From positions 124,001 to 188,000 of the IMG/VR virus record IMGVR_UViG_3300005613_000002: a stretch of DNA of 64,000 nucleotides; one strand, given 5' to 3'. A model generated the notes under the pieces. The model searched no databases and had not been told where the DNA came from. It saw only the letters and a program-made list of their open reading frames with translations. This document shows positions 5,585 through 36,551 of this stretch, piece after piece. The translations under genes were made by a program, and so were the position numbers. The stretch's first letter is position 1. Every line of letters starts with the position of its first letter.

Positions 5585-5602
5585 CAAAAATTAATAAAAA
5601 AT

Positions 5603-6865: not shown

Positions 6866-6866
6866 T

Positions 6867-7076: not shown

Positions 7077-7105
7077 TATTATAGTAAATTTGAAAAAAAT
7101 TAAAC

Positions 7106-8544: not shown

Positions 8545-8629
8545 GCCGAAGTGGTGGAATTGGTAGACACGCCAGATTTAAGCTCTGGTGAGCATTATGC
8601 TCGTGTGGGTTCGAGTCCCATCTTCGGTA
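8545..8629 (+). tRNA. tRNA-Leu(TAA)
   Basis: CCAGA-TT-TAA-GC-TCTGG arm; long variable arm. Confidence 0.9.
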
Positions 8630-8905
8630 CAAAATTTAATAAAAATGAAAGCATACGGATTAAATAAAAAATTTAGGTTTAATTATCCAGATAATCATCC
8701 ACCAAAAGGATGGGTTAATTGGTGGGAAACAGAAATGGGTAGTGTTAATAAAGGGAGAGCCAGACAAGAAGCTAAACGTAATTTAAGAAAGGAGATTAAT
8801 GGTGAAAACGACTAAAAAAGATAATGATTGTGGTTGTGGTAAACCATTAAAAATTAATGACAAAAGAAAGAAGAAGTTTATTAAAAAGAAAAAGAGAAAA
8901 AATAT

Positions 8906-8986
8906 GCTCAAGTGATGTAACGGTAGCCATGCTTGTTTCAAAAGCAAGTGTCTAATGACGTGTGGGTTCGATTCCCACCTTGAGTA
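8906..8986 (+). tRNA. tRNA-Leu(CAA)
   Basis: CTTGT-TT-CAA-AA-GCAAG arm; long variable arm. Confidence 0.85.
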
Positions 8987-9330
8987 CAAATAATTGAAAA
9001 GATGAATAATGAAGAAATTGAACAATTAAAGAGAATGGTTGATAGTTATATTTATAATTTAACTAAAACACCAAATACAGCTAATCCTAAAGAAATTGAA
9101 CTTGCAAATTTAGTAAGAAATAAAATAAATCAGACTAATTTCAATAAAAAACCAGTTGAACAAAAACCTACTTGCACATATAGAAATCATTTTTCTGATA
9201 TTGAGGATTATGGTAGATGTAGAAAATGTAGGGCAGGATTTAGCTTTATATAATAATTAAAACTATTTATAAATGATGAAAACAAATAAAGAAAGGGTAT
9301 CAGTTTTCTAAGTATAAAAACTTAGAAAAT

Positions 9331-9624
9331 ATGAAAGCAAAAAGAATTATTGATGAAACCACAAATCGTGGTGATTTTAATCGTGCATATAAAAGTTATT
9401 TAGCACAGACAGGGAAAATTCGTTGTGGTTATTGTAAATATAATCGTAGTTGTAATAATCCTAGTCATTATGGTGGTTATGAGGATGATAAAAATGGTTT
9501 AAGATATCCTAGTTGGAAATTAGTTTCAAAAAATAGAAAACAATGGATGGAAAAACCGTTAAAGAAAACAACCAGAACAATTATGAGAAATAGTTCTGAT
9601 TATATCACTTTCAAATGGAAGTGA
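9331..9624 (+). CDS. Small basic hypothetical protein with CxxC motif
   Basis: 97 aa ORF. Confidence 0.5.
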   Translation: MKAKRIIDETTNRGDFNRAYKSYLAQTGKIRCGYCKYNRSCNNPSHYGGYEDDKNGLRYPSWKLVSKNRKQWMEKPLKKTTRTIMRNSSDYITFKWK

Positions 9625-9629
9625 TTTAT

Positions 9630-9702
9630 GGCGAGTTAGCTCAATCGGTAGAGCGTTGGCTTCATAAACCAAAGGCAGAGGGTTCAAATCCCTCACTCGC
9701 TA
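9630..9702 (+). tRNA. tRNA-Met(CAT), elongator-like
   Basis: TT-CAT-AA loop, GGCGAGT acceptor. Confidence 0.8.
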
Positions 9703-9717
9703 CAATTAATCCCAACA

Positions 9718-11767: not shown

Positions 11768-12856
11768 ATGAAAATACTAGAAAAAATAGATTGGAGTGTC
11801 TTAGACACATATATTGAAAATAATTTAATTGTTTCAAACAAACATCCAGATTATGATATTTGGATATTAAATTATTCACCAAAAACACAATATAATCAAT
11901 TATGGGATGAATATACTTTATCTTGTCGTGGACTTATTATTGATGCAGAAGGTAATATATTAGGTAGACCATTTCAAAAATTTAAAAATTTCGAAGAATA
12001 TGACCCATCAGAAATTGATATGTCAAAAAAATATGAAATCTTTGAAAAAATGGATGGTTCGTTAATTATTTTATTTTATTACTCTGTGACTAATGAATGG
12101 ATTGTTGCAAGTAGAGGCTCATTCATATCTGAACAATCAGATGAAGCAAGAAAAATGCTTAATAAAATTGACAATATTTTTAGTAAATTAAGTAATAATT
12201 TCACATACATATTTGAAATATTATATGCTGAAAATAGAATAGTCGTTAACTATGGAAATAGATGGGAACTAGTAATGTTAAGTTGTATCGACACTGTTAC
12301 TGGTATTGAATTGAAACATAAAAATTTAGTTGGTGGATATTCTGATTATTTTTCAATTGTGAAAAAATATGATCTAAAAGTTAATGATTTATTTGAACTT
12401 AAAAAACTTGATGAAAATAATAGAGAAGGTTTTGTGATTAGGTTTGAGGATGGTTTTAGAATTAAAGTTAAATTTGAAGAATATGTGAGATTACACGGTA
12501 TTCTTACAAATGTGTCTAATGTTACAGTTTGGGAACACTTAATGAATAAATATGATTTTGAATTATTATCAGATAGAGTTCCAGATGAAATGTATACTTG
12601 GTTAAATAAAACTATAAGTAAATTACAAATAGAATATAATGAAATTGAAAGATTAGCACTAAAAGAATTTGTGAGAATTTATCATATAAATAATATTACA
12701 ACTCGTAAAGAATTTGCAATGGAAGCATTGAAAAGTAAATATCGTTCAATATTATTTAATGTGTTTGATAGAAAATCTTATGATATCATCATATGGAAAA
12801 TGATAAAACCAATTCGTAGCACACCATTTAGAGATGGTTATGAATATATTGCTTAA
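11768..12856 (+). CDS. T4 Rnl1-like RNA ligase
   Basis: CRGLI, KFKN, EKMDGS (motif I), FE, NRIVV, EGFV, KVK. Confidence 0.85.
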   Translation: MKILEKIDWSVLDTYIENNLIVSNKHPDYDIWILNYSPKTQYNQLWDEYTLSCRGLIIDAEGNILGRPFQKFKNFEEYDPSEIDMSKKYEIFEKMDGSLIILFYYSVTNEWIVASRGSFISEQSDEARKMLNKIDNIFSKLSNNFTYIFEILYAENRIVVNYGNRWELVMLSCIDTVTGIELKHKNLVGGYSDYFSIVKKYDLKVNDLFELKKLDENNREGFVIRFEDGFRIKVKFEEYVRLHGILTNVSNVTVWEHLMNKYDFELLSDRVPDEMYTWLNKTISKLQIEYNEIERLALKEFVRIYHINNITTRKEFAMEALKSKYRSILFNVFDRKSYDIIIWKMIKPIRSTPFRDGYEYIA

Positions 12857-13003: not shown

Positions 13004-13084
13004 ATGAAAACTAATAAAACATATTACGGTTATAAATCATATAAGAAAAATCTTATTGATATCGGGATTGTTTTGTTAAATTGA
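13004..13084 (+). CDS. Leader peptide 2 (MKTNKTYYGYKSYKKNLIDIGIVLLN), putative attenuator
   Basis: 26-codon Tyr/Lys-rich ORF; ATCGGG (13061-13066) complementary to terminator CCCGAT; TATATTTG and GTATTTAT motifs upstream. Confidence 0.8.
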   Translation: MKTNKTYYGYKSYKKNLIDIGIVLLN

Positions 13085-13119
13085 TAACAAAGTATAAACA
13101 ATGATTTTATATAAACATT

Positions 13120-13150
13120 GAGACCCGATTCGAAAGATTCGGGTCTTTTT
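13120..13150 (+). terminator. Attenuator terminator 2
   Basis: AGACCCGA / TCGGGTCT hairpin with U-tract. Confidence 0.85.
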
Positions 13151-13365
13151 GTTTTATAGTAAATTGTGAAAATATTGAAAGTTATTTGAAATTGTGATAG
13201 AAAATTTAAATGAAAAATTATTAAATGAATTTGTGTAACATACGCAATCGTGAGATAAAAAAACAAGAACAGTGGAAGGTGCTGACAGGCATTGATTCGG
13301 GAAATAATTTAGTAGGTTGGGTAAGTATAAAACAAAAGTAAAATAATGAGTAGACATACTAATAG

Positions 13366-13450
13366 ACATTTGTAGCTCAGTTGGTAGAGCAAGGGAACAC
13401 GTTTGCGTATCTTTAATCCCTGTGCGTAGGTTCGAATCCTACTGAATGTA
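13366..13450 (+). tRNA. tRNA-Lys-like gene with 20-nt expanded anticodon loop
   Basis: AGGGA/TCCCT stem encloses ACACGTTTGCGTATCTTTAA. Confidence 0.6.
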
Positions 13451-13471: not shown

Positions 13472-13552
13472 GGATAGGTAGGTAAGTGGTTAAAACGGGT
13501 GGACTGTAAATCCATTGCTTCGGCTTCGGGGGTTCGAATCCCTCTCTATCCA
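13472..13552 (+). tRNA. tRNA-Tyr(GTA)
   Basis: GTGGA-CT-GTA-AA-TCCAT arm; long variable arm. Confidence 0.9.
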
Positions 13553-13586
13553 CAACAGGTTACTAAATAATAGTAACATTAATGAT

Positions 13587-13661
13587 ACACCTGTAGCTCA
13601 GATGGCAGGTAGCTACGCCCTTTTAAGGCGAAGGTCATGGGTTCGAGTCCCATCAGGTGTA
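13587..13661 (+). tRNA. tRNA-Lys(TTT)
   Basis: CGCC-CT-TTT-AA-GGCG arm. Confidence 0.85.
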
Positions 13662-13788
13662 CTTCGAGATATTTTGCAGTTTTTGACTCTTTCAATAAAA
13701 ACTGAGAATAGTGGACAAGGTACGAAAGGAATTTCCAAATGTCAGAGATAATTTCAATGACGTGAACTAACCAATAATGTTCACAAAC

Positions 13789-13872
13789 GGGTAGGTATGC
13801 AAATTGGTGAAGCAAGCGGTCTGTAAAACCGTGACGTAAGAGACAATGGCGGTTCGAGTCCGTCCCTGCCCA
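13789..13872 (+). tRNA. tRNA-Tyr(GTA)
   Basis: GCGGT-CT-GTA-AA-ACCGT arm; long variable arm. Confidence 0.9.
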
Positions 13873-13901
13873 CATTACTAAAAAATAGTAATAATAGGCA
13901 T

Positions 13902-13976
13902 TCCCCTATAGCTCAGTTGGTTTAGAGCACCTCACTTTTAATGAGGGAGTCCTCGGTTCGAGTCCGAGTGGGGGAA
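13902..13976 (+). tRNA. tRNA-Lys(TTT)
   Basis: CCTCA-CT-TTT-AA-TGAGG arm. Confidence 0.9.
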
Positions 13977-14058
13977 CTAAATATTTTAATTTTCCTTGCA
14001 ATTATAATTATTTTTTGTTATTTTTAATTAAAATAATTCTATATAAGTATTAATAAAT

Positions 14059-17834: not shown

Positions 17835-19133
17835 ATGAATAGAGGATTCAATTTTAGGGTTTACCCAACTGAAAAACAACGTGAATATTTTAATGAATGT
17901 TTTAGAATTTCAAATTTCATTTATAATTATTCTTTAAGACAACAAATAGACATATCTGAAAGTTTAGATGATATGGGAATTAAAGACAAAGAAGAAAGAA
18001 ATAAATATATGACAGTTAATAAATTATATTTCAATAAATATAAAATGAGTAATTTATTAACTCAAATGTCTAAAACAGAAGAATATTCCTTTTTAAATAT
18101 CAATTCTTTATTAAGAGGTTATTCGTTAAGACAAATTGATAATGCTTTTAAAAATATGAGAAAAACTGGTGCTGGTTTTCCTAAATTTAAAAATAGATTA
18201 TCAAAAAAAACATATTCTAGTCAAATTCAAAAAAGAACTAAATTTCATTTAAATTTAAATAATGAAAAATTTGGATATTTATCGACACATAAAATTGATA
18301 AATTAAAAATATCATGTCATGATGAATATTTTAGAAAAAATTATAAAGATAATACAAAAATTAAATTAAATTCATTTACTATTACAAATAAAGGTAATCA
18401 ATATCATATATCAATTCAGGTAGATGTTATTGACCCAAATTTTAATTTAAAACATAAAGAAAGTGAAATTAATGAAAATTCATCAATAGGAATTGATTTA
18501 GGAGTTAAAAGACCAATTACTACATCAAATATTAATGATTTCGATGAAAAAATATTTTCAACTCAAATACAATTATTAAAAACGTATAGTGAAGAATTAA
18601 AAAAATTATCATCAATATTAAATAAAAAACGTGATTACCATAAAAAAAATAAAACAGATATTAAATATTGGGAAAGTGTTAATTATATTAGAATAAAAAA
18701 TAAAATTAGTTCACTACATATTAAAATTGGTAATATTAGAAGTAATATTCAACATAATATAACAAAAAAATTAATTAATTTAGATAATGTTGATTCATAT
18801 ATTCTTGAAGAATTAAAAACTAAAAATATGATGAAACGTAGTGGGAAAGGTTTATCTAATAATAAAAGTGGGTTAAATAGAGTACTTAGTGATGTTGGAT
18901 TATATGGAATAAGAGAAAAATTAACATATAAAGCTGAACGTATTGGTAAAAATGTTATTACAGTACCACCACAATATACTTCACAAAAATGTTCGAATTG
19001 TGGTCATATTAATAAGAAAAATAGAAAATCTCAAAGCAAATTTAATTGTGTTAAATGTGGTTTTAAAATTAATGCAGATTTAAATGCTGCGATAAATATA
19101 AAAGATAAATATTTTAAAAAAAATGTTGTTTAA
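17835..19133 (+). CDS. TnpB/Cas12f-like RNA-guided nuclease (compact type V effector candidate)
   Basis: OrfB HTH RVYPTEKQ, RuvC-I GIDLG, RuvC-II LEEL, CSNC/CVKC Zn finger, RuvC-III NADLNAAINI; CRISPR array 200 nt downstream. Confidence 0.85.
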   Translation: MNRGFNFRVYPTEKQREYFNECFRISNFIYNYSLRQQIDISESLDDMGIKDKEERNKYMTVNKLYFNKYKMSNLLTQMSKTEEYSFLNINSLLRGYSLRQIDNAFKNMRKTGAGFPKFKNRLSKKTYSSQIQKRTKFHLNLNNEKFGYLSTHKIDKLKISCHDEYFRKNYKDNTKIKLNSFTITNKGNQYHISIQVDVIDPNFNLKHKESEINENSSIGIDLGVKRPITTSNINDFDEKIFSTQIQLLKTYSEELKKLSSILNKKRDYHKKNKTDIKYWESVNYIRIKNKISSLHIKIGNIRSNIQHNITKKLINLDNVDSYILEELKTKNMMKRSGKGLSNNKSGLNRVLSDVGLYGIREKLTYKAERIGKNVITVPPQYTSQKCSNCGHINKKNRKSQSKFNCVKCGFKINADLNAAINIKDKYFKKNVV

Positions 19134-22437: not shown

Positions 22438-22480
22438 TTTGGAGTTAATGTAACATTTTATACCTTTGTAACGTATTTAT
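22438..22480 (+). promoter_or_regulatory. Composite promoter of tRNA operon 3
   Basis: TTTG-N19-TACCTTTG, TGTAAC-N17-CGTA and GTATTTAT overlap. Confidence 0.65.
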
Positions 22481-22531
22481 GAACTCAAGGCAGTAAGCCA
22501 GTAAGATTTTAACAATAAAAAATAGATTATT

Positions 22532-22669
22532 ATGAGAAATTCAGTTATTAATATTAATATCACTTCGGGAACGACTATTAGTCGCAATGGGAATGGTATA
22601 TTCTGTTCAATTTTTGGCAGAAATATTACACATGACGAGTCTTTAATAATGGAAGAAGATAGAGGATAA
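22532..22669 (+). CDS. Leader peptide 3 (MRNSVININITSGTTISRNGNGIFCSIFGRNITHDESLIMEEDRG), putative attenuator
   Basis: 45-codon ORF; CGAGTCTTT (22636-22644) complementary to terminator AAAGACTCG (22695-22703). Confidence 0.8.
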   Translation: MRNSVININITSGTTISRNGNGIFCSIFGRNITHDESLIMEEDRG

Positions 22670-22691
22670 AAAACTCTAACTAAACGAAATT

Positions 22692-22726
22692 AAAAAAGAC
22701 TCGATATTAATCGGGTCTTTTTTTTT
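22692..22726 (+). terminator. Attenuator terminator 3
   Basis: AAAAAAGACTCGAT / ATCGGGTCTTTTTT hairpin with U-tract. Confidence 0.85.
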
Positions 22727-22750
22727 GTTCATTGACGTGTTGGTAAATTT

Positions 22751-22833
22751 GTCGGGATGCCTGAGTGGTTGAAAGGGGCGGTCTGCAAAACCGTTTGCGA
22801 AAGCACACGTGGGTTCGAATCCCACTCCCGACT
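22751..22833 (+). tRNA. tRNA-Cys(GCA) with long variable arm
   Basis: GCGGT-CT-GCA-AA-ACCGT arm; TGC-GAAA-GCA variable arm; U73. Confidence 0.8.
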
Positions 22834-22896
22834 CATTGTAATAATTTGCAATAAACTACAAAATGTGGTATTTATCGCAAATTAATATTCAAATAT

Positions 22897-22970
22897 TGTC
22901 TTGTAGCTCAGTTGGTTAGAGCATCTCTCTGATACGGAGAAGGTCGTGGGTTCGAGTCTCACTAAGACAA
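22897..22970 (+). tRNA. tRNA-Ile(GAT)
   Basis: TCTCT-CT-GAT-AC-GGAGA arm. Confidence 0.88.
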
Positions 22971-22979
22971 CAACAATAT

Positions 22980-23053
22980 TGTCTCGTAGTTCGGTCTGGT
23001 AGAGCGTCACCCTGATAAGGTGGGAGTCGTGGGTTCAAATCCCACCGAGACAA
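22980..23053 (+). tRNA. tRNA-Ile(GAT)
   Basis: TCACC-CT-GAT-AA-GGTGG arm. Confidence 0.88.
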
Positions 23054-23108
23054 CAACTCTTGACGAAGATTTTGCATTGGTTTTTCAAACCAGCACGTAT
23101 TTATTAAT

Positions 23109-23447
23109 ATGAAAAAACGTGGTGGTCATAAAATTGGAATTGAAGGATTGTTAAAAGCAGCCGATAAAAAAAGAATGACGAATGAAGAATGTTTTATTGA
23201 AAATTCAACATATCCTCGTCATAGATTAAAAGAAAGAATAATTAAACAAAATTTAATTGAATATCGTTGTAAAATTTGTGATAATAATGGAATGTGGATG
23301 AATAAACCAATGCCATTAATATTAGACCATAAAAATGGTATTAATAATGATAATAGAATAGATAACCTTAGATTTGTTTGTAGTAATTGTGATTCTCAAT
23401 TACCAACATATAAAAATCGAAGGGGAAACATAAAAATGGAAGATTAG
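23109..23447 (+). CDS. HNH homing endonuclease
   Basis: CKIC..LDHKNGINNDNRIDNLRFVCSNC. Confidence 0.85.
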   Translation: MKKRGGHKIGIEGLLKAADKKRMTNEECFIENSTYPRHRLKERIIKQNLIEYRCKICDNNGMWMNKPMPLILDHKNGINNDNRIDNLRFVCSNCDSQLPTYKNRRGNIKMED

Positions 23448-23526
23448 CCTAATTGGTAAGGCAGCAGTCTTGAAAACTGCCGTGTCATGTAAAAGTGGCT
23501 TGTGGGTTCGAGTCCCACATCTTCCT
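23438..23526 (+). tRNA. tRNA-Ser(TGA)
   Basis: GCAGT-CT-TGA-AA-ACTGC arm; long variable arm. Confidence 0.88.
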
Positions 23527-23531
23527 CATTT

Positions 23532-23604
23532 TGACCTTAATACGGGAACATGAAGATTCTGTGTCATGACACTTCTTCGGGAGGTTCGAAACCTTCAAGG
23601 TCAG
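23532..23604 (+). ncRNA. Degenerate tRNA-like element
   Basis: TGACCTT/AAGGTCA acceptor and GGAGG-TTCGAAA-CCTTC T arm; no canonical D or anticodon arm. Confidence 0.45.
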
Positions 23605-23845
23605 CTAAGTTGAATGAAATGGATAAAATCATTTAACTTATACATCAAATGAAAGTCATGAAGTTATTTGATGTGAAAGTTCTGGGTGCATAAGACGCTG
23701 CTTTAACATTCAGTAGAATTATTTTGTGGACGTATTTGGCAGTACGGATATACACAACTTAAAACTCCGAGATGTTACGAATTAATGGTTGGAATACCAT
23801 CGGAGATCGTGAGTAGGAGGCTCACACCAGAACTATTTTTAATTT

Positions 23846-23931
23846 GGCTTGGTTGCTTTAGTGGTCGAAAAGTCTGGACTGTTAATCCAGTGAACTATGT
23901 TCCATCGTGGGTTCGAATCCCACCCTTGCCT
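23846..23931 (+). tRNA. tRNA-Asn(GTT) with long variable arm
   Basis: CTGGA-CT-GTT-AA-TCCAG arm; two U-U mismatches in the acceptor stem. Confidence 0.7.
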
Positions 23932-23942
23932 CAACACAAATT

Positions 23943-24014
23943 GCTCCGATAGCTCAGTGGTAGAGCAGAAAGCTGTTAACTTTAAGGTCGTAGGTTCAAT
24001 CCCTACTCGGAGCG
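23943..24014 (+). tRNA. tRNA-Asn(GTT)
   Basis: AAAG-CT-GTT-AA-CTTT arm; G73. Confidence 0.88.
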
Positions 24015-24064
24015 CAAGGGACGTAGAAAGGAGAATACGTCTTTAAATAAAGTCCTTTCATTAT

Positions 24065-24137
24065 GGAGTAATTACCAAGTTGGTCAAGGTGCTGGCGTGA
24101 AGTCCCAGAAATGTGGGTTCGATTCCCACTTACTCCA
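24065..24137 (+). tRNA. tRNA-Phe(GAA), atypical loop
   Basis: Loop GT-GAA-GT; normal acceptor and T arms. Confidence 0.7.
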
Positions 24138-24143
24138 CATAAT

Positions 24144-24271
24144 GGTGTTATAGCTCAGTTGGTCAGAGCGTTGAGTGATAACTCAAGTCAGAAATTAAAT
24201 ACGAATTGGTTAAGGTTAAAACGAAAATTCTACTGATTTAATTTGCATTGGTTCAAATCCAGTTAACACCA
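24144..24271 (+). tRNA. tRNA-Ile(GAT)-like gene with ~55-nt insertion in the variable region
   Basis: GGTGTTA/TAACACC acceptor, TTGAG-TGATAA-CTCAA arm, T arm displaced to ~24247. Confidence 0.6.
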
Positions 24272-24486
24272 CTTGAGCGTGATAAACAATATTTTACAAA
24301 ATGACGATAATGCATCAATGTTGTTATTTTATGGGTGTGATTCCCATGCTTAAACGAAATTAAAATCTGGTCACACAGGTGTTTGTCCTAACCAGAAAAA
24401 CATGACCTCTTTAGCAGGTGGTATCTTAGTTTGGGCAACTAAGAGTGTGAAAATATTTATTAGTATTTATAAGAAAATTACACATA

Positions 24487-24912
24487 ATGAAAATATTAAT
24501 AATGGGATTACCTACTTCAGGTAAAACATGGTTTGCTGAAAGATTACAAAATGAAATTGGTTGTGCATGGTATAATGCTGATGCTGTTAGAACAATGGCT
24601 AATGATTGGGATTTTAGTGTTGAAGGTCGTAACAGACAAGCACTGAGAATGAAAACATTTGCTGATTTTGAAAATAATAATGATAGAATTGTTGCTTGTG
24701 ATTTTGTCTGTCCTACACCAGAAACTAGATTATTATTTAAACCTGATTTAATTATTTGGATTAACACTATTGATAAATCAAAATATCAAGATACTAATAA
24801 AGTTTTTATTAAACCAAATGATTCAGAAGGTTTTAAATTAATTGAAATCACAAAAAAAGTTATACTTGAAGATATAATTGAATTAGCAAATAAACATATA
24901 ACAACAAGTTGA
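24487..24912 (+). CDS. Adenylylsulfate-kinase-like P-loop kinase
   Basis: GLPTSGKT, NADAVR, DWDFSVEGR, DFVCP. Confidence 0.75.
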   Translation: MKILIMGLPTSGKTWFAERLQNEIGCAWYNADAVRTMANDWDFSVEGRNRQALRMKTFADFENNNDRIVACDFVCPTPETRLLFKPDLIIWINTIDKSKYQDTNKVFIKPNDSEGFKLIEITKKVILEDIIELANKHITTS

Positions 24913-25068
24913 GAATGTAATGCAGCGATGTATTACCAACAAACATTAATTTTATAACCTCTGGGAACTGGCATGTTATAGATGTAAGAATGCTACACTG
25001 AAACAAGACGCTAAAAGCCAGTATATAGCCAAGTAGGGTAGTTTGGAGTGATAATGTCTCAACAAAAT

Positions 25069-25142
25069 GGTGCGGTAGCTGAGTTGGTTCAAGCGTTGGA
25101 CTGAAAATCCAAAGTAGGTGGGTTCAATTCCCACACGTACCA
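25069..25142 (+). tRNA. tRNA-Phe(GAA)
   Basis: TTGGA-CT-GAA-AA-TCCAA arm. Confidence 0.88.
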
Positions 25143-25206
25143 CAATTTTATTTTCATTAAATGAAAATCTTTTGTCATTATCATAGTATTTATGTGAAAA
25201 ATATTA

Positions 25207-25682
25207 TGGAAATACAAATAAAAAAATTATTAAATGAAGGTAAAAGTATGTCTGAAATTGGTATAATATTGGATAGGCATAGAACTACTATTAGTAAAAT
25301 AGTTAAAGCAAATGGATGGAAACGTGAAATAGTTAAAAATATTAATTGTGTTGTTTGTAATGAAAATTTAGGGATAAATAAAAAAAATAATACTAAATGT
25401 ATGACATGTGTTACTAAATTAAGACGTTTACGTTTAAAAATTAAATGTGTTGAATATTTAGGTGGTAAATGTGTTAATTGTGGATTTGATAAACATTTAG
25501 CAGCATTACAATTTCATCATAGAAATAGTAATAATAAGGATTTTCTAATTAGTTCAATAAATACTAAATCTTGGAAACTTATAATTGAAGAATTAAATAA
25601 ATGTGATTTACTATGTGCAAATTGTCATGCAGTTAAACATTCAACAAATTATGATGATGAAAATTTAAGAAAATTCTTATAA
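25207..25682 (+). CDS. HNH endonuclease with N-terminal HTH
   Basis: GGKCVNCG..LQFHH..KCDLLCANCH; start refined to the ATG after GTATTTAT. Confidence 0.8.
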
Positions 25683-25766
25683 ATAATACATTTAATGGTC
25701 ACTCGAATGTTAGACCTCCTGTAATTACAGGTGAATCCAAGAGGTTCAGTAAAAAGTCGAGGCTTT

Positions 25767-25838
25767 GCAGGTGTAGCACAATGGCTAGTGCGTGACCCTT
25801 CCAAGGTCGGGATGACGGTTCGATTCCGTTCACCTGCT
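25767..25838 (+). tRNA. tRNA-Gly(TCC)
   Basis: TGACC-CT-TCC-AA-GGTCG arm. Confidence 0.9.
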
Positions 25839-25887
25839 CCTTTGGTCGTTTTTTGTACTTCTCAGTATTTATGAGAAAGTACAAATT

Positions 25888-26523
25888 ATGGCTAGAAAAG
25901 AAAAAAAATATCATTTCATATATAAAACAACTAATGTTGTTACTAATAGATATTATTATGGAATGCATAGTACCGATAATTTAGATGATAATTATTTAGG
26001 TAGTGGTAGGAGATTAAAATACTCAATTAATAAACATGGTAAAGAAAACCATGAAAGAGAAATTGTTGAATTTTGTCAAGACCGAAGTTCATTGAAAAAA
26101 CGTGAAAGTGAATTAGTTAATCTTAATGAGATTGCTAAAAAAGATTGTATGAATCTAATGGTTGGTGGGACTGGTGGTTTTGTTTCTAAAGAAGCAGCAA
26201 GAAAAGGTGCTAAAGCACTGAAGATTAAATATGGTGATGAATATAAAAATAAATTGATAGAATGGGGTGCTAAAGGTGGACAATCAACATCGGATAAACA
26301 TGGTTCACCATTTAATAATATTATGAATAGATGTAATTGGACTAATAAAAGTCATACCGAAAAAACTAAAAGAAAAATGAGTGAGTCAAGTAAAGGTATC
26401 GGTATTGGAAATAATAATTCACAATTCGGTACTTGTTGGATTACAAATGAAAAAGATAATAGAAAAATAAATAAAGAAGACTTAATCCCAGAAGGATGGA
26501 GATTAGGAAGAAAAATAATATAA
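25888..26523 (+). CDS. GIY-YIG (Seg-like) homing endonuclease with NUMOD3 repeat
   Basis: FIYKTTN..YYYGMH..YLGSG; HTEKTKRKMS. Confidence 0.85.
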   Translation: MARKEKKYHFIYKTTNVVTNRYYYGMHSTDNLDDNYLGSGRRLKYSINKHGKENHEREIVEFCQDRSSLKKRESELVNLNEIAKKDCMNLMVGGTGGFVSKEAARKGAKALKIKYGDEYKNKLIEWGAKGGQSTSDKHGSPFNNIMNRCNWTNKSHTEKTKRKMSESSKGIGIGNNNSQFGTCWITNEKDNRKINKEDLIPEGWRLGRKII

Positions 26524-26570
26524 GGTCTGAGGGAGTCCTTTAAAGGTATAAATAACCTGTCCCTCTCCAC

Positions 26571-26643
26571 GCCACCCATAGCTTAATTGGCTAAAGCAGG
26601 GCACTTGTAATGCTCAGATGCGGTTCGAGTCCGATGGGTGGCT
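26571..26643 (+). tRNA. tRNA-Thr(TGT), possible 8/4 fold
   Basis: GGGCA-CT-TGT-AA-TGCTC arm; 8-bp GCCACCCA/TGGGTGGC acceptor. Confidence 0.8.
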
Positions 26644-26793
26644 CAATTTTTTGGTTTATTGCACTGGATTTTTCATGTTTAAACGTATTCATTAACTAAA
26701 TATAACAAAGGCAATAATAAAGGTAACGGTAGAAATAGAAAATAATTTCATTAGATACATCAATTACTTAATATTTTTTCATATCTTTACAAT

Positions 26794-26988
26794 ATGAAAT
26801 ACATTCATATAAAAACAGGCAAAATCTATCATGTTCTTTCATTTGATGTCACTAATGCAACAAATGCACAAGATGGTCAACAAATGGTGCATTATTATGG
26901 TGAAAAAAAAGATGGTAGTGGAAATAGTTATTTTGTTAGAGAAATTAGTGAATTTGAATTAAAATTCACAAAATATCATAAATTATGA
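26794..26988 (+). CDS. DUF1653-like small protein
   Basis: YIHIKTGKIY...VHY...FVREISEF..KF. Confidence 0.6.
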   Translation: MKYIHIKTGKIYHVLSFDVTNATNAQDGQQMVHYYGEKKDGSGNSYFVREISEFELKFTKYHKL

Positions 26989-27027
26989 AAAAAGGATACA
27001 ATTAATAATGTAAATTAACTATTATAA

Positions 27028-27102
27028 TGACCCGTAGCTCAGTTGGTTAGTAGCAGTTCCCTCATAAGGAAAAGGTCGGGGGTTCGAGTCCCTTCGGGTC
27101 AA
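27028..27102 (+). tRNA. tRNA(CAT), probably Ile2 (lysidine type)
   Basis: CT-CAT-AA loop; acceptor resembles the Ile(GAT) tRNAs of the same cluster. Confidence 0.75.
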
Positions 27103-27232
27103 CTTTTGGTCTTATAAACGACCACAAAAATAAAAGGGTTGGAAAAACGAAATTGATTACTGCAATATGATAGATTAGTTTTATGCCCACCACATAAGTT
27201 TGATTTTGCTGATGATAATGAAAAAGTGGTTA

Positions 27233-27303
27233 TACTTGTTAGTACAATGGATAGTGCACCCTTTCGAAAGAGGGTTATATTGGTTCGAATCCAATGCAGG
27301 TAC
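27233..27303 (+). tRNA. Degenerate tRNA-Arg(TCG)-like gene
   Basis: Acceptor, D and T arms present; irregular anticodon stem around TTTCGAA. Confidence 0.5.
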
Positions 27304-27575
27304 AATATTTTAATTATTCTCAAGGACAATATCTAGGACATAATGTACTTGAGAATAATTAAAAATTATAAGATACATGTTAAGGAACAATTGGGTTCTT
27401 TAGTGTTATGAAAATTAATATTTGTTAACCTAATTTATTAGGTGGTGATAGACAAGCCATACGGATTTACTGCTTGAAATATAGCATATCGCAAATAAGT
27501 GTTCAACTGAAGGTGGGTCATGCGCATAACAATTTGACCGTAGATTACTCAGTAGCTGACAAATATAATTTTTAT

Positions 27576-27649
27576 GCCAACATAGCTTTAATTGGTAGAG
27601 CACAACACTTGTAATGTTGGGGTTGGGGGTTCGAATCCCTCTGCTGGCT
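27576..27649 (+). tRNA. tRNA-Thr(TGT)
   Basis: CAACA-CT-TGT-AA-TGTTG arm. Confidence 0.88.
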
Positions 27650-27675
27650 CAGAATAATTAATAAAAATTGAAAAA

Positions 27676-28074
27676 ATGGTATTGCAAGAAAAAATTAAAA
27701 AAGAAATGCTTTCTGCTATGAAAGCAAAGGAAACTGAAAAATTAAGTTTTTTGAGAGTTCTTAGTGGTGAATTAAGTACAAATAATAAAAGAACTGGAAA
27801 AGAAAAATTAGATGAATTACAAATTATTCGTAAAATGTCTAATAACGCTAAAGAATTAGGTAACTTAGTTGAAGTAGAAATGCTTAGTGAATATCTACCA
27901 AAGATGCTTGAACCAAAAGAAATTAAAGTTATTGTTAAGAATATCATTGATGTAAATGGTTATTCAACAATGAAAGAAATGGGTCAGATAATGGGGAAAA
28001 TTAAGCAATGTAAAGAAAGTACAAAAATTGATATGAAATCAGCTAATATTTTTATTAGAGAATTATTAACATAA
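27676..28074 (+). CDS. GatB/YqeY domain protein
   Basis: LQEKIKKEMLSAMKAK..LR; YLPKML; MKEMGQIMG. Confidence 0.85.
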   Translation: MVLQEKIKKEMLSAMKAKETEKLSFLRVLSGELSTNNKRTGKEKLDELQIIRKMSNNAKELGNLVEVEMLSEYLPKMLEPKEIKVIVKNIIDVNGYSTMKEMGQIMGKIKQCKESTKIDMKSANIFIRELLT

Positions 28075-28246
28075 TAAACAAAATGAATTATACAATAACC
28101 TTAATGAAAAATAAATTAACATTTGAAAACGAGAAAAGAAAATAGGTTTCATTGAATGGTTATGCCTTTATTGATGATTGGGGTCATTGTATGATTATTG
28201 TTTATGGTGAAAATAATAGAGATAAATATATTGAACATTTAAATAT

Positions 28247-28320
28247 GCACCCGTAGCTCAAATGGATAGAGCATCAGATTTCTAATCTGTGGGTCGGGGG
28301 TTCGAATCCCTTCGGGTGTA
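28247..28320 (+). tRNA. tRNA-Arg(TCT)
   Basis: CAGA-TT-TCT-AA-TCTG arm. Confidence 0.9.
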
Positions 28321-28328
28321 CTAAAAAT

Positions 28329-28405
28329 ATCTGTGTAGCTCAATTGGATAGAGCATTTCCCTGCGAAGGAAAAGGTTGTGTGTTCGAATCACATCACAGA
28401 TACCA
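28329..28405 (+). tRNA. tRNA-Arg(GCG)
   Basis: TTTCC-CT-GCG-AA-GGAAA arm; encoded CCA. Confidence 0.85.
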
Positions 28406-28467
28406 ATATTTATAGTTCAAATGTCGAATATTTATTATTTTTTTCGTAAATTGAACTATTTAATAAT

Positions 28468-29070
28468 ATGGAAAAAAATAAATTGAGAAAATATTGTAAT
28501 GATGGATTATCATCACGAAAGATTGCTGAAATTGAAAATGTTTCACAAACAACGATCAGATATTGGTTAAAAATATATAGTTTAAAAACAATTAGAAAAG
28601 CAAAATATAATATTAATGAATTACGTAAAATTATTGCCGAATCTAAATCACGAAATGAGGTCTTTACTAAATTAAATAGAAATAATTCAAGTGGTGCATA
28701 TAAATCATTAAATAAAATTATTACAGAATATAAAATTGATATTTCACATTTTATGAGTGTTGGTGATAATTTAAAACAATCACATCAACAAAAAGAAATC
28801 ACTAATGACGAAATGTTTTGTGAAAATGGTAAAAATGGTAGAGCAACAATAAAAAGAAGAATATTACGAGATAATTTATTAAAATACAAATGTTTTAATT
28901 GTGGACAAGGGAATAAATGGTTAAATAAAAATTTGGTATTAATATTAGACCATAAAAATGGTATAAATAACGACAATAGATTAAAGAATTTAAGATTTGT
29001 GTGTCCTAATTGTAATTCGCAATTACCAACACATTGTAATAAAAAACGCACTTGTAGCTCAATTGGATAG
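28468..29070 (+). CDS. HNH homing endonuclease
   Basis: LDHKNGINNDNRLKNLRFVCPNC; paralogue of the 23109 ORF. Confidence 0.85.
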   Translation: MEKNKLRKYCNDGLSSRKIAEIENVSQTTIRYWLKIYSLKTIRKAKYNINELRKIIAESKSRNEVFTKLNRNNSSGAYKSLNKIITEYKIDISHFMSVGDNLKQSHQQKEITNDEMFCENGKNGRATIKRRILRDNLLKYKCFNCGQGNKWLNKNLVLILDHKNGINNDNRLKNLRFVCPNCNSQLPTHCNKKRTCSSIG

Positions 29071-29121
29071 AGTAGTGGTTTTCGAAACCAAAGGTTGTGA
29101 GTTCGAGCCTCACCGAGTGTT
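29048..29121 (+). tRNA. tRNA-Arg(TCG)
   Basis: TGGT-TT-TCG-AA-ACCA arm. Confidence 0.85.
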
Positions 29122-29338
29122 CAAATATTATTTATTATGGTAAAAGAAAACATTAATGCAATTTATGCAAACACTTGGGAAGGGTTAACAGTGAAGATGT
29201 TAGGTTATTATCATGACCATTGTTATCATTTATATACTGGTAGTTGTGAAGATTTACCTGAAAAATATAAGCGATTTAAAAAAAATAATGTTAAATTTGT
29301 TTTTCTATATGAAGAAGATGAACCAAATGTAAAAAAAA

Positions 29339-29725
29339 ATGGATGATAAAAAAGAATTTAATATTGATGAAACCAGAAATCTTGATGAATGTGTGGATTG
29401 GGTAAAATGTTATATGTGTTCAGGCGAAAATGGTGATGATGAATTAAAAGAATGGTTAAAATTAGATGAAGATGATGCTATGATGATTCATCATGGTTTT
29501 GGTACTATTATTAGAAACATACTAAAACTTTGGGATGGCGGTCCTGCCGTTCAATGGTTTAACAAACAAGGAATTTATCATGCTGATGATATGTCTGCAA
29601 TTATATTTGCTTCATTACATAGAAAAGAAAATGGTGTTGAAATTGAATTAAATAAACAAATTAAAGTTTATAGGGATTATTGGGATAATGAAGACCCAAA
29701 TATAAATAAAGGAATAATTAACTAA
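29339..29725 (+). CDS. DUF6794-like protein
   Basis: HHGFGTIIRN..LW..GIYHADDMS. Confidence 0.6.
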   Translation: MDDKKEFNIDETRNLDECVDWVKCYMCSGENGDDELKEWLKLDEDDAMMIHHGFGTIIRNILKLWDGGPAVQWFNKQGIYHADDMSAIIFASLHRKENGVEIELNKQIKVYRDYWDNEDPNINKGIIN

Positions 29726-29731
29726 TTAAAT

Positions 29732-29807
29732 GCGAGATTAGCTCAATTGGTAGAGTACGACCTTGCCAAGGTCGGGGTTGTGGGTTCGAACCCCATATCT
29801 CGCTCCA
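29732..29807 (+). tRNA. tRNA-Gly(GCC)
   Basis: CGACC-TT-GCC-AA-GGTCG arm; encoded CCA. Confidence 0.92.
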
Positions 29808-29835
29808 TAAATAATTTTAATTAAAAATAATTAAT

Positions 29836-30351
29836 ATGAAAGACGGAAACAAGTCAGGCAAAAATGCTCCTGAACAATCTAAAGAAAAAGAAGGTGTTAT
29901 TTCACCAGATGGTATTTTAACTAACGAAGATTATAATCTTGATCTAAAAGAAAGGTTGGAATCTAAAAGGAATTCTGAAATAATTAAGTTTAATGAATTA
30001 ATGAAATTAGCACCAGAATTTGCTAAATGGTTAAAAAATTTAGTAAGATATGGTAATGTTGATTCACAAGCCATGATTTATAAAACTCAATTAGATAATA
30101 AAAAAGAGAACAATTTCAGTGTAATTATTTACACTAATGACCATTCTTATTCATTTTATGGTTTTGCACCAACAGATGAAAAACCAAAAGGATATTTAGG
30201 TGGTGGTGGTAATACTAGAAAACCAAGAGTTGGTGAAGATTGGAATCGAGGAAATGATTTACCTGATGGTTCATATTCTAAAAAAACATTTGATGCAATA
30301 GTGTATCGAATTGTTGCATATGAATTAAAAAATTTACAACTTTGGAGATAA
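29836..30351 (+). CDS. Hypothetical phage protein
   Basis: 171 aa; RKPRVGEDWNRGNDLPDG. Confidence 0.55.
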   Translation: MKDGNKSGKNAPEQSKEKEGVISPDGILTNEDYNLDLKERLESKRNSEIIKFNELMKLAPEFAKWLKNLVRYGNVDSQAMIYKTQLDNKKENNFSVIIYTNDHSYSFYGFAPTDEKPKGYLGGGGNTRKPRVGEDWNRGNDLPDGSYSKKTFDAIVYRIVAYELKNLQLWR

Positions 30352-30619
30352 TTTGTAACATTTTTAAATAAATTACGTATAGGTTATTATATATTTATTA
30401 AATGAATTCAAAAGCAGAGATCAAAAGAATAAGACACTTAGCTGAAACACGTAATAATGGTGTTTATAGAGAAGTGGGAATTAAAAATAAATTTAGTTTA
30501 TCTTATTTATGTAATTATATTTGGCATAAACCTACCCCAATTACAGAATAAGATAAAATAATTAATGGCAACCGAGTAAACGTTAGCTTTACAGAAGAAC
30601 GGAGATTAATTATTAATGA

Positions 30620-30992
30620 AAAAAATAATACAGAGGATTTATCGCTACATGGACACTATCATGGACATAATGTCCATGACTATGTAGAGGAACTTCAGGA
30701 CACCATTGCTAGACGCAGGAGATAGTAAGTTAAAGCTGTTAGGTTAATCACCTTCGGGAGTTTATATTTTAAAAAAGGTTAGTAGTGAATATAAACGTAT
30801 GAATTAAACAAACCAGTAACCTTGAAAGACCCGATAACTATCGTTCGTACTGCGGAGGGTGCAAGCTAAACAGACTTAGAGGGAAAGCAACTTAATTATA
30901 GTCGGGTTAGTGCACTCCGAAAGGAGCATATCATAAGATATGAGATAAATGATAAAATAAAACAAAATTCTGGGTACGCTCATATTATTTTT
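30620..30992 (+). ncRNA. rnpB: RNase P RNA
   Basis: CR-I-like GAGGAACTTCAGGACACC, GCAAG, AGATAAATGAT and CR-V-like ACAAAATTCTGGGTA; terminal P1/P2 complementarity. Confidence 0.8.
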
Positions 30993-31480
30993 TATAGTAA
31001 AATTTTTAAAAATACGTATAATAATTACAATTAATTTATTACTTTTGTGTTTATAAATCATTAAACAAGAACAAAATGATAAAAAGAAATGTATTAATTG
31101 AAAAATTAAATTCTTGGAAAGCAAGAGAAAACGGAGTAAGTATTCATTTGTTAAAGTTAATCAGTCTTGTTGCTGATGGTGATAATGAAGAATATTCTCC
31201 ATTAGATGAAATAAAGCTAGTGTGTGATAATAGAAACAATACACCTGAAATAGTTGGTTTCACTATGGAATTTATTGATGATGTTTTAAAAAATAATAAA
31301 TAAAATAAAAATGGTTAAAAAATATGGATTCATTATTATGATAATTATTGGATTAATTTTAATTTACAGTAATATGTTCTATACTGAATCTAATTTTAAT
31401 TTAATTTTATGGGGAATTGGAATACTAATTACTTTTATTGGTGTTTTATTTTTTTCATTTTCAAAAATAATAAAAATATT

Positions 31481-32341
31481 ATGATATCAAACAGAGCAAA
31501 ACGAATAGGTTTAAAAGAATTAGAAATTTTTGATAATTTTTTTATTGATAAAACATTACCTAAATTTAAGATGGAATCCACTAATAATAAGGCAGATATG
31601 GGTGGGGTTTCATGGTCAACACCATCTGAAGGTGGTGTTACTGATAGTGGGAATTGGGAAAATGATTCTGGTGGGTTTTCGTTTAGAAGAAAGTTAATTT
31701 CGTTGTTATCTCCAAAAGATAAAAAACCGAAACAACCGAAAAGAACATTAACTACTCTTGAATTATTTACTGCATTATCAAAATCATATAAAGAATTATC
31801 AAAAATTGGTGAGGTTGCTGAACATTACGAAAAAGCACTTATTCAAGCAAAAACATTAGGTCAAACAGCATTGTTTGATAAATTAAAAGATTTAGTTGAT
31901 GTAGTTAAAGGTGAAGCAATATTAATTGCAATGGGTTTAACCAAATATGTGACTGAAAAACAAATTGTTGATTTTTATGGGTTAGTTGGTGAGGATAAAA
32001 ATTTAAAGTTGACATGGATTAAAAACTTCAATAGAATAATTCCTGAAGATATTTACGAAGTTAAAAAAGATGTTGATGGACGTAAAATATTTGATAATTA
32101 CGTTATTCTTCATTATGACCCAGAAAATAATGGCGAAGAATTAACAAAACAAGAATTAGAAGATAAAAAAGACCCAATATTATTCGGTTTGATTAAAGAT
32201 AGTAAAAAACTTTATTATGTTGCTGATTGGAAAGATGATTATTGTGATTTAACTCTTGAAGAAATGTTTAATGAATTAGGTGAGAAAACATTAAAAATTA
32301 ATAACAGAAACGTAAAAACATTCATTGATAAAATTAAATAA
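31481..32341 (+). CDS. Hypothetical phage protein
   Basis: Long ORF with KDPILFG..YYVADWKDDYCDLT; start uncertain. Confidence 0.55.
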   Translation: MISNRAKRIGLKELEIFDNFFIDKTLPKFKMESTNNKADMGGVSWSTPSEGGVTDSGNWENDSGGFSFRRKLISLLSPKDKKPKQPKRTLTTLELFTALSKSYKELSKIGEVAEHYEKALIQAKTLGQTALFDKLKDLVDVVKGEAILIAMGLTKYVTEKQIVDFYGLVGEDKNLKLTWIKNFNRIIPEDIYEVKKDVDGRKIFDNYVILHYDPENNGEELTKQELEDKKDPILFGLIKDSKKLYYVADWKDDYCDLTLEEMFNELGEKTLKINNRNVKTFIDKIK

Positions 32342-32709
32342 TGAAAGAAAACATTAATAATATTGCAGAAAAAATGTCAAGACTAAACGCTGTTGAACTT
32401 AGTGAGTTATCAAGTGTTTTATTATCTAAATATAATATGAGTGCAACAATTTATCATTTTGGTGTTGTACCAACAATAGAGAATCCTAATAATAATAATA
32501 AATGTGATTTAGTATTATTAGAATGTGGTCAAAGAAAATTAATGATTGTTAAATCAATTAAAGAAATTTTCGGATTAGGTCTTAAAGAAGCAAAAGATAT
32601 TATAGACACAGTACCAACCTATCTTAGTAAATCAATATCAATTGTAAAAGCAGAAAAAATTAAATTAGTGTTAGAGGAAATTGGTGCTAAAGTTGAAATT
32701 AATTATTAA
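32341..32709 (+). CDS. rplL: Ribosomal protein bL12 (L7/L12) homologue
   Basis: LNAVELSELS N-domain; KLMIVKSIKEIFGLGLKEAKDIID..P..AEKIKLVLEEIGAKVEI C-domain. Confidence 0.8.
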   Translation: MKENINNIAEKMSRLNAVELSELSSVLLSKYNMSATIYHFGVVPTIENPNNNNKCDLVLLECGQRKLMIVKSIKEIFGLGLKEAKDIIDTVPTYLSKSISIVKAEKIKLVLEEIGAKVEINY

Positions 32710-32936
32710 TGGAAAATAACATTGATGTTTGTACTGCTTGTGGGAAATGTTGCAATAAACATTGGCTAGTTAAATTAACTAGTCAGCACGAAATTGATAT
32801 GTTTGGTGATGATGTTGTTGATGGTGGTTTTATTTGGACAGATACTTGTAAGTTTCATATTGATAATAAATGTTCAATCCATGATGATAAACCATATAAA
32901 TGTAAACAATATTTTTGTGAAGGTAATTTAAAATAA
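32709..32936 (+). CDS. YkgJ-like CxxCxxCC cysteine-cluster protein
   Basis: CTACGKCC..C..CSIHDDKPYKC. Confidence 0.7.
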   Translation: MENNIDVCTACGKCCNKHWLVKLTSQHEIDMFGDDVVDGGFIWTDTCKFHIDNKCSIHDDKPYKCKQYFCEGNLK

Positions 32937-33191
32937 TTTTTATGTCTATAATTAGTGAAGGAATTGCTGAACAAACAGCAAATAAATTAGAGAGAATAAT
33001 TCTAACTGCTATAAATAATAGAAAGTATGGCGACCATAGGAGTTCTGTTAGAGATTTTGTTAATAATGAACTTGTTGAATGGTACTATTCAGAATGTGAT
33101 GAAACATTTGGAATGAGTAAACCAAATCCTGAAATATTGAAAATGTTTCCACGAAAAAAATAAATATCGGAAGGTTGGTAGTGTGAATATT

Positions 33192-33276
33192 GGTGAGATA
33201 CTCAAATGGTAAAGAGGATAGTTTGCTAAACTATTAGGCTGTAACAGGTGCGTGGGTTCGAATCCCACTCTCACCG
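33192..33276 (+). tRNA. tRNA-Ser(GCT)
   Basis: ATAGT-TT-GCT-AA-ACTAT arm; long variable arm; G73. Confidence 0.9.
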
Positions 33277-33935
33277 CATTTTATGTTTATTATTTTTTGA
33301 ATAATATTTAAAAATTTAATTGATGTTTGTTCTTTAAAATATTTTTGCATTGATGTATCAATTATACACAATTCTATATCTTGCTCAATACACGCTTGAA
33401 ACTTACGATTATCATTATTTTGAATTTGGTTTAATTTATCAGAACCAAAGATTGGTTCATAATGAAATATACCATTAAGTTCAAACGCAAGTTTCAATGA
33501 TGGAATATAAATATCGAGTTCAGAATTAATAGCATCTTTATGATTGAAATTAAACTCAATGGTTGGATATAATATAGTTAGTTTAGATTCTAACCATTTT
33601 TCTAATTTAGATACACGAGTCCCATGTTTTTTATGGGTATTATTGTATGTTGCTGCACAAGATTTAGAACAGAAGTTATTTTTTGTTCTTAATATTTGTG
33701 ATGGAATTTTAGTAAATTTATTACCACAATTAATACAATGCACTTCAATTTTTGTTTGCATTGATGTATTACATTTTTGAGAACAAAACATACATTTGTC
33801 TTTTCCACCATTTAAGTGAGAAATAATCTGTCTTTTTTCAACGAAAAAAATTGATTGACAAGTATAACATTCACATGATAATTTATCACCAATCTTAGCA
33901 GTATTCAATTCATCGTCAGTAAATAATGGTTTCAT
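33234..33935 (-). CDS. Zn-finger + PD-(D/E)XK (Vsr/DUF559-like) homing endonuclease
   Basis: Repeated CxxC..FCSxxC; ELDIYIPSLKLAFELNGIFHY. Confidence 0.75.
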   Translation of the reverse strand: MKPLFTDDELNTAKIGDKLSCECYTCQSIFFVEKRQIISHLNGGKDKCMFCSQKCNTSMQTKIEVHCINCGNKFTKIPSQILRTKNNFCSKSCAATYNNTHKKHGTRVSKLEKWLESKLTILYPTIEFNFNHKDAINSELDIYIPSLKLAFELNGIFHYEPIFGSDKLNQIQNNDNRKFQACIEQDIELCIIDTSMQKYFKEQTSIKFLNIIQKIINIKCGESGIRTHAPVTA

Positions 33936-35543: not shown

Positions 35544-35616
35544 GCTCCTGTGGCTGAATGGTTAAAGCAATGGACTCTAAATCCATTTTTTGCAGGTTCG
35601 AATCCTGTCAGGAGCG
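35544..35616 (+). tRNA. Amber suppressor tRNA (CTA)
   Basis: ATGGA-CT-CTA-AA-TCCAT arm; GCTCCTG/CAGGAGC acceptor; G73. Confidence 0.88.
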
Positions 35617-36551
35617 CAAAAAATAAATATAATGAATAAAATTATTGCCGAAGAATTACACAAAACTGAACCAGATAAATTTAAAATTTTCAGAGAATGG
35701 GGAAGTGTTAATAATAAAATTAAAGATTTTGAAAATAAAGCAAACCTAAAAACATTTAAATATCTTTTTGGTGAAGATGGGCAAAGATTATGTGAACATT
35801 TTAAATATGATTGTGAAACTAATGTTAATAAATTAAAAACATATTTAAAATATGAACAATATAACGATTTGCTTGTAAACATATATTATAATGATAATTT
35901 GTTTATTATTTAAAACAGATCAATAGATTTCATGATAAATTAGATGAAGTCAGTAGTAGACTTAAAGTAATTATTGATGATGAAACAAAAAAAGATGAAT
36001 GTAATGTTTTATCATTAAAATATTTCTTTTTAACTAATTTAGGGATAAAAATTGATGAATCTGTTGAATTTACTGTAAAACATTATCTTGATATGATAGA
36101 TAATGAGAATCCAATAACATTAATAAATGAACTTAAATAAATAAGATGGAAGTAAGTTATAATTATAATGAATTAGAATTCACTGCATATTATGATGAAG
36201 ATGGATATTTAAAATTTGTTAAAGATAATATCCATAATAAAGCATTAATGATTGAGAGTATTCAGGAAGGTAAAGGGTTTAATATTTCTAAATCTTCTTT
36301 TATGATGGATGGTTTTACTTGTCACGGAATGTATGTTCGAGTTATGGATATTAATTTATTCATACCAAAATTTATTTTCATAAAAAACAAAACTGATTAA
36401 TTATGGGAATGGATGTAGATGCTATTGTTGCAAGACAAGCAATTGAGAAAATTGGGAAAGTTTTATTAAGTGTAGAACATGGTGAACGTGAGGAAATTAC
36501 TGATGAAATTATAGAATTTTCAAAAAAACTTGAAAAAAAGTTTGGAAATAA

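Follow-up and report, generated by a model that had tools for sequence, protein, structure and literature searches.

Leader-peptide attenuation has been known for 50 years for amino-acid operons, and the multivalent attenuators of E. coli, such as ilvL (Ile/Leu/Val) and thrL (Thr/Ile), as well as trpL, hisL, leuL and pheL, combine a short leader ORF carrying a run of regulatory codons with mutually exclusive antiterminator and terminator hairpins, the antiterminator overlapping the end of the ORF. In the pheM-pheST attenuator, a leader peptide would likewise control a component of the translation apparatus, phenylalanyl-tRNA synthetase. T-box riboswitches also couple tRNA status to an antiterminator/terminator choice upstream of translation-related genes, although they bind uncharged tRNA directly through a single specifier codon and a conserved T-box sequence, without translation. 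Leader-peptide attenuation has also been reported in Flavobacterium for amino-acid biosynthesis operons (PMC9723704). Here, we describe a predicted leader-peptide attenuator ahead of a tRNA array in a giant uncultured phage.

The window analysed is a 64-kb stretch (27% G+C) of a 321,624-bp viral contig, IMG/VR 3300005613_000002, and carries about 40 tRNA genes and a tmRNA, all on the + strand. An ORF of 45 codons plus TAA (22532-22669, + strand) precedes an intrinsic terminator at 22692-22723 (14 pairs with a loop of 4, followed by a T tract; feature 22692-22728), which lies 23 nt before the first of 19 tRNA genes (Cys, starting at 22751). Of codons 2-33 (22535-22630), 31 of 32 encode C, I, S, N, F, G, T, M or R, the amino acids of the tRNAs at 22751-33277, with Val at codon 5 as the only exception. 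Because these amino acids make up 45.7% of the window's long ORFs, this match is far beyond chance (binomial tail of 5e-10), and in a six-frame scan of all 64 kb the run ranked second overall and first on the + strand. The first-pass annotation had reported the 31-of-32 match, together with codon-level pairings and a perfectly complementary 9-nt antiterminator, and was correct in every checkable detail: CGC is matched by Arg(GCG), AGA by Arg(TCT), AGT by Ser(GCT) and ATA by a CAT tRNA, and all four Gly codons are used. In total, 12 of the 13 distinct anticodons of the array are addressed, only Arg(TCG) being left out, and the leader uses codons that are very rare in this genome (CGC, 0.4 per 1000; GGC and ACG, 1.4 each; TCG, 2.8). 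However, that the CAT tRNA (27028-27103) is Ile2 stays unproven and could not be settled by alignment. The D and T arms of this tRNA resemble those of the window's tRNA-Ile(GAU), and relatives carry tRNA-Ile(UAU) in their arrays instead. The antiterminator strand CGAGTCTTT (22636-22644, inside codons 35-38) is the exact complement of AAAGACTCG (22695-22703), the core of the terminator's 5' arm, whereas the 3' arm core lies at 22712-22720 (-12.7 kcal/mol for the core hairpin).

The downstream array 3 (22751-33277, + strand) consists of Cys, Ile x2, Ser, Asn x2, Phe, an Ile-like tRNA with an insert, Phe, Gly, Thr, CAT, one undetermined, Thr, Arg x3, Gly and Ser, and is interspersed with HNH, GIY-YIG, YqeY-like and L7/L12 genes. 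Outside tRNA bodies, no strong + strand terminator was found before 34018. A homologue of ribosomal protein L7/L12 (Pfam E = 5e-19) is encoded at 32341-32709, and an Rnl1-like RNA ligase, a YqeY-like protein, and HNH and GIY-YIG endonucleases (11768-12856, 27676-28074, 23109-23447 and 25888-26523) lie around and between the tRNAs, together suggesting tRNA repair and mobile-element traffic in the arrays. With the tmRNA, this neighbourhood fits a phage that manages tRNA supply. Additionally, a TnpB / IS605 OrfB (Cas12f-like) gene (17835-19133) is inserted between the ribonucleotide reductase and the VWA gene. Several tRNA genes, at 13366-13450, 24144-24271, 5984-6057, 27233-27303 and about 5505-5585, are atypical: one has a 20-nt anticodon loop, one is Ile(GAU)-like with a 57-nt insert in the variable region, two have undetermined anticodons, and one is a Leu(UAG)-like sequence that neither tool scored. 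An amber-suppressor tRNA (anticodon CTA, 35544-35617) follows a promoter candidate at 35187 and a 100-aa ORF, which suggests TAG recoding in part of the genome. Five relatives (L010, L011, L015, L017 and L026) carry one too.

The inferred promoter region (22438-22476, + strand) holds a host-type TTTG-N19-TACCTTTG (22438-22468) overlapping an ECF-sigma-like GTAAC-N17-CGTAT (22450-22476). The same 25-mer occurs at 2565 and 22446, and the region is conserved in relatives. TTTG-N19-TAnnTTTG has 5 sites in the window against 1.3 expected, whereas GTAAC-N16-19-CGTAT has 13 sites, all on the + strand, against 0.19 expected (2569, 5604, 7052, 10381, 22450, 30355, 35187, 36553, 43987, 62643, 63073, 63212 and 63861). 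The latter is probably the phage's main promoter class here and, with its CGT box, resembles ECF-sigma promoters. The flavobacterial sigma-A and ECF consensus sequences were taken from PMC9723704. Internal candidates of this class at 5604, 7052 and 30355 could feed parts of the arrays independently of the attenuators. In array 3, no such site lies between 22751 and 29807, but one (30355-30380, + strand) sits ahead of the L7/L12 gene and tRNA-Ser(GCT), the last tRNA.

The same layout was found ahead of the other arrays in the window. Unit 1 (2557-2853, + strand) comprises a promoter (2557-2595), a leader ORF (2650-2766), an antiterminator TCGGGTTT (2738-2745), a terminator (2787-2820) and a boxA-like motif (2837-2853), and precedes the array Asp Asp Glu Leu Glu Val Leu Ala, one undetermined, Ala Trp tmRNA Leu Leu Met (2860-9703). 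Residues 9-27 of its leader match the array at 18 of 19 positions, the best DELVAWM run in all six frames of the window (p = 4e-8). The tmRNA gene (8007-8367) has its own GTAAC-N-CGTAT promoter candidate at 7052-7077, so that a ribosome-rescue RNA sits beside units that would depend on ribosome stalling. Unit 2 (13004-13150, + strand) has a leader ORF at 13004-13084 with 9 Lys or Tyr in 14 consecutive codons, the best K/Y run in the window, an antiterminator ATCGGG at 13061-13066 and a terminator at 13121-13150, and precedes Tyr Lys Tyr Lys (13472-13977). A 38-codon ORF between its terminator and the tRNAs (13226-13342) is conserved in locus L004 (shared EQWKVLTG segment). Because no tRNA for Pro, His or Gln lies in the window, we predicted a fourth unit outside it. 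Indeed, the 10 kb upstream on the same contig hold Pro His Pro Pro His Gln Gln, preceded by a promoter, a 27-codon ORF in which 8 of 9 consecutive residues are Q, H or P (background 7%, p = 5e-9), and a terminator. The four arrays together cover all 20 amino acids, with Met tRNAs in two of them, and each leader lists its own share.

Sixteen contigs encode the neighbouring VWA protein at 52-69% identity, whereas the proteins at 2036-2533 and 591-2009 gave no useful syntenic relatives. Thirteen of these loci (all but L011, L012 and L017) keep the Lys/Tyr array upstream of the VWA gene, and the YY.YKSYKK core of the unit-2 leader is conserved in 12 relatives. However, the number of AAG codons in the Lys/Tyr leaders does not follow the presence of tRNA-Lys(CUU), as nearly all of them hold one AAG and one TAC regardless. 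Twelve of the thirteen loci also show array 3 downstream (L007 ends before it), and all 12 have an ORF with a conserved core in the leader position, representing 11 distinct relatives because L006 and L013 carry the same leader. Alignment of the whole leaders with MAFFT misaligned the antiterminator, so duplex energies were calculated per locus instead. In the window's leader and the 11 distinct relatives, a segment is complementary to that locus's own terminator arm, starting at codons 32-36 in 11 leaders and at codon 58 in L010. This complement co-varies with the terminator: the window has CGAGTCTT/AAGACTCG where most relatives have CGGGTT/AACCCG, and the flanking pairs differ from locus to locus. 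The mean duplex energy with the leader's own arm is -13.2 kcal/mol, against -10.3 with other arms (0 of 100,000 permutations do as well), and for the window the values are -12.6 and -4.3 kcal/mol, respectively. Moreover, a more distant phage, L024, carries all four units in compact form, with different peptide sequences and the same matches, for example, a QPQPQHH run before Pro His Gln. In the unit-1 leader family, third codon positions show more change than the other two, and the middle positions swap freely among Leu, Val, Ala, Asp, Glu and Met, suggesting selection on composition, that is, on which tRNAs are called, rather than on a folded peptide.

To search without reference to leader or tRNA content, IMG/VR was scanned with the terminator 3' arm CGGGTTTTTT, 1-25 bases, and then GTTCWTTGAMAT, a motif seen after the terminator. 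The scan gave 86 stretches, of which 80 were listed as loci. In 76 of these a + strand tRNA array follows, 10-18 nt after the motif in 61, and nearly all have a short ORF ending just before the terminator. The arrays differ widely, and the leaders follow them: LTLSLCTLSRRS precedes Ser Thr Cys Arg Leu Leu Met Ser Arg, LRQTSQLSLHTPSLSRPS precedes His Ser Ser Arg Gln Pro Leu Leu, VVNTLVLNLCLLVV precedes Cys Val Leu, and GCDWQQE precedes Gly Trp Cys Gln Glu Asp. For 17 distinct array types, the summed enrichment z-score of each leader for its own array is 49.7, whereas permuted assignments give 6.0 +/- 5.5 with a maximum of 33.6, and 0 of 200,000 reach the observed value. Conversely, 117 of 120 array amino acids have at least one codon in their own leader. 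Notably, one array has tRNAs for 19 amino acids and lacks only tRNA-Pro, and its 31-residue leader contains 19 different amino acids and lacks only Pro (only 0.19% of random 31-mers reach 19 kinds). Many leaders of different array types (loci L032-L111) share an N-terminal MK(N/T)L(L/F)(D/N)IL-like start that does not follow array content, which points to common descent or to a role in initiation or early pairing. In 596 Gb of bacterial and archaeal genomes the same pattern hit 46 times, and only two hits show the leader-plus-array layout. Two contigs deposited as Saccharibacteria and Paceibacterota MAG sequences (L150 and L152) carry these units and are probably phage contigs binned by mistake; that of L152 has the same length (362,763 bp) as IMG/VR 3300029288_000055. 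Megablast, blastn and tblastn searches against GenBank phages found no close relative and no similar leader, the best protein identity being about 30%. The system is therefore viral and widespread in one group of uncultured large phages.

The leader RNA is more structured than shuffled controls (z = -3.65). At equilibrium the complete RNA, with or without ribosome masks, always forms the terminator, so the switch would have to be kinetic, and only the nascent RNA lacking the 3' arm was informative. When this RNA was folded with a 27-nt ribosome mask, the terminator's 5' arm was paired with the antiterminator (probability at least 0.95) with the P site on codons 1-31, and the pairing fell to about 0.2 with the P site on codons 32-41. 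In unit 1, the pairing is high up to codon 26 and low on codons 27-35, the switch again falling at the end of the array-matching run. Unit 2 shows a smaller, more gradual drop, from about 0.7 to 0.4 beyond codon 15, within a few codons of the end of its run, and the fourth unit (unit 0) shows only a modest rise, to about 0.6, over codons 7-15. A ribosome stalled on a sensor codon would therefore favour read-through, and one that passes would favour termination. However, the model also forms the antiterminator with no ribosome at all, and again with a ribosome at the stop codon, which lies 22 nt beyond the antiterminator, so that termination needs tight timing between ribosome and polymerase.

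Between the terminator and the first tRNA lies GTTCATTGACGTGTTGG (22727-22746, + strand), which occurs in the window only here and at 2837. The consensus of this motif across the viral loci is GTTCTTTGACATrTTGGAAA. The same 12-mer followed by TGTTGG lies 195, 196 and 161 nt before the 16S rRNA in two Novosphingobium genomes and a Patescibacteria genome, and E. coli boxA lies 131 nt before rrsB. This identity concerns positions 2837-2853 and 22727-22743 of the window, noted together with positions 127-156, 6094-6123 and 1161-1183 of the further sequences L146, L149 and L151, respectively. Where a tRNA-Thr(GGU) is inserted after the terminator (L008 and L016), the motif stays next to tRNA-Cys and a shortened copy precedes the Thr gene. 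We therefore read the motif as a boxA-like antitermination signal, which is a lead rather than a demonstration.

Taken together, these data support the interpretation of region 22438-22750 as a ribosome-mediated transcription attenuator that gates a phage tRNA array, and we consider this reading likely, although, in the absence of transcript, ribosome or reporter data, translation of the ORF, stalling and regulated read-through are inferred from sequence. In the proposed mechanism, transcription starts at the conserved promoter and a ribosome translates the leader, whose codons 2-33 sample nearly every tRNA species encoded downstream. If any of those charged tRNAs is scarce, the ribosome would stall within the run, leaving 22636-22644 free to pair with the emerging 5' arm, so that the terminator cannot form and RNA polymerase runs on into the array. 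If all are plentiful, the ribosome would move onto codons 32-41 and cover the antiterminator, and transcription would stop. The read-through RNA then carries the boxA-like element, which probably loads a Nus-type antitermination complex for the long untranslated array. The net effect would be negative feedback, each array being made when its own tRNAs run short, but host tRNAs also read these codons, so the actual signal is uncertain.

The same attenuator might instead respond to amino-acid starvation or to the general translation capacity of the infected cell, for example, as a timing device. A stalled ribosome cannot tell a missing tRNA from an uncharged one, classical attenuators sense charging, and the rare codons would make the leader sensitive to a general slow-down. 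Nevertheless, we regard this alternative as unlikely, since more tRNA does not relieve amino-acid starvation, and a general sensor would not need its codon set to follow each array's content across 17 array types, nor to omit exactly the amino acid whose tRNA is missing. Still less probable is that the ORF is an ordinary small gene with its own terminator, or the terminator merely an insulator, and that the array is transcribed from another promoter at or after the GTTCTTTGACAT motif. This motif contains TTGACA and TTTG, GTTCTTTGA is also the -33 part of a host-type promoter upstream of the VWA gene in relatives, and internal promoter candidates exist. However, reading the motif as a sigma-70, Bacteroidetes sigma-A or ECF promoter was rejected because a -10 or -7 box at proper spacing would fall inside the tRNA. 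The 12-mer plus TGTTGG sits at the boxA position of bacterial rRNA leaders, this reading does not explain the leader/array match or the co-varying antiterminator, and the radical residue swaps argue against a folded peptide. An RNA-only, T-box-like sensor, although the regulated genes belong to the translation apparatus as with T-boxes, is very improbable, as the matching triplets are all in one frame, which opens with ATG and closes with a stop just beyond the antiterminator in every relative, no T-box or Stem I match was found in Rfam, and ten to thirty specifiers in a row have no precedent.

Why large phages carry dozens of tRNAs, and how they deploy them, is an open question, and phage tRNA genes are generally treated as constitutively or temporally expressed cargo. 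A leader whose codons mirror the downstream array implies that expression follows demand, gives a testable read-out of which tRNAs become limiting in infected cells, and shows a regulatory sequence whose composition co-evolves with gene content. More tentatively, these units might form a modular, phage-encoded tRNA homeostat, in which a checklist ORF is rewritten as its array gains or loses tRNAs, letting the phage detect depletion of particular tRNAs (by host anticodon nucleases, phage-induced decay of host tRNAs or a codon-usage mismatch) and replenish exactly that set. If so, it would be the first case of tRNA genes controlled by translation of codons they themselves decode, and a sensor arm of phage counter-defence. 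In practical terms, the element marks tRNA operon boundaries in metagenomic phages and offers compact, reprogrammable sensors of specific tRNA availability.

No description of leader-peptide control of tRNA genes, in phages or in cells, was found in the literature searched, which covered few subscription-journal papers, and no Rfam family reached threshold at this locus, only tRNA and tmRNA reaching gathering in the window. Among the Rfam leader families, including His_leader, Leu_leader and Trp_leader, the best scores were those of Phe_leader (19.9 bits) and Thr_leader (17.8 bits), against a gathering score of 55, and both cover the terminator only. An attenuator ahead of the E. coli tRNA-Phe gene pheV was not supported, with no leader ORF or terminator upstream. 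T-box riboswitches gave no match even at E <= 10, and neither Stem I with its specifier loop nor the conserved T-box sequence was found here. The pheM-pheST attenuator is cellular and would control a synthetase gene and one amino acid. In the Flavobacterium study, the probable host phylum was shown to use leader-peptide attenuation and the promoter types seen here (TAnnTTTG, and a CGT box of ECF type), although for bacterial amino-acid biosynthesis operons rather than for tRNA genes or phages. The post-terminator motif GTTCTTTGACAT matches E. coli boxA TGCTCTTTAACAA at 9 of the 12 overlapping positions (10 of 13 when a T precedes the motif) and, like the rrn signal (NusB/NusE site), stands at the head of a long untranslated structured-RNA operon, but here it follows a terminator predicted to be regulated and precedes phage tRNAs, and would link attenuation to rrn-type antitermination in one leader. 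Compared with the multivalent ilv and thr attenuators, the unit has the corresponding short ORF, overlapping antiterminator and terminator, whereas its targets are tRNA genes instead of biosynthetic enzymes, the sensor in such units lists up to 19 amino acids and most isoacceptors of the array, and it is phage-encoded, modular (four units per genome) and followed by a boxA-like element.
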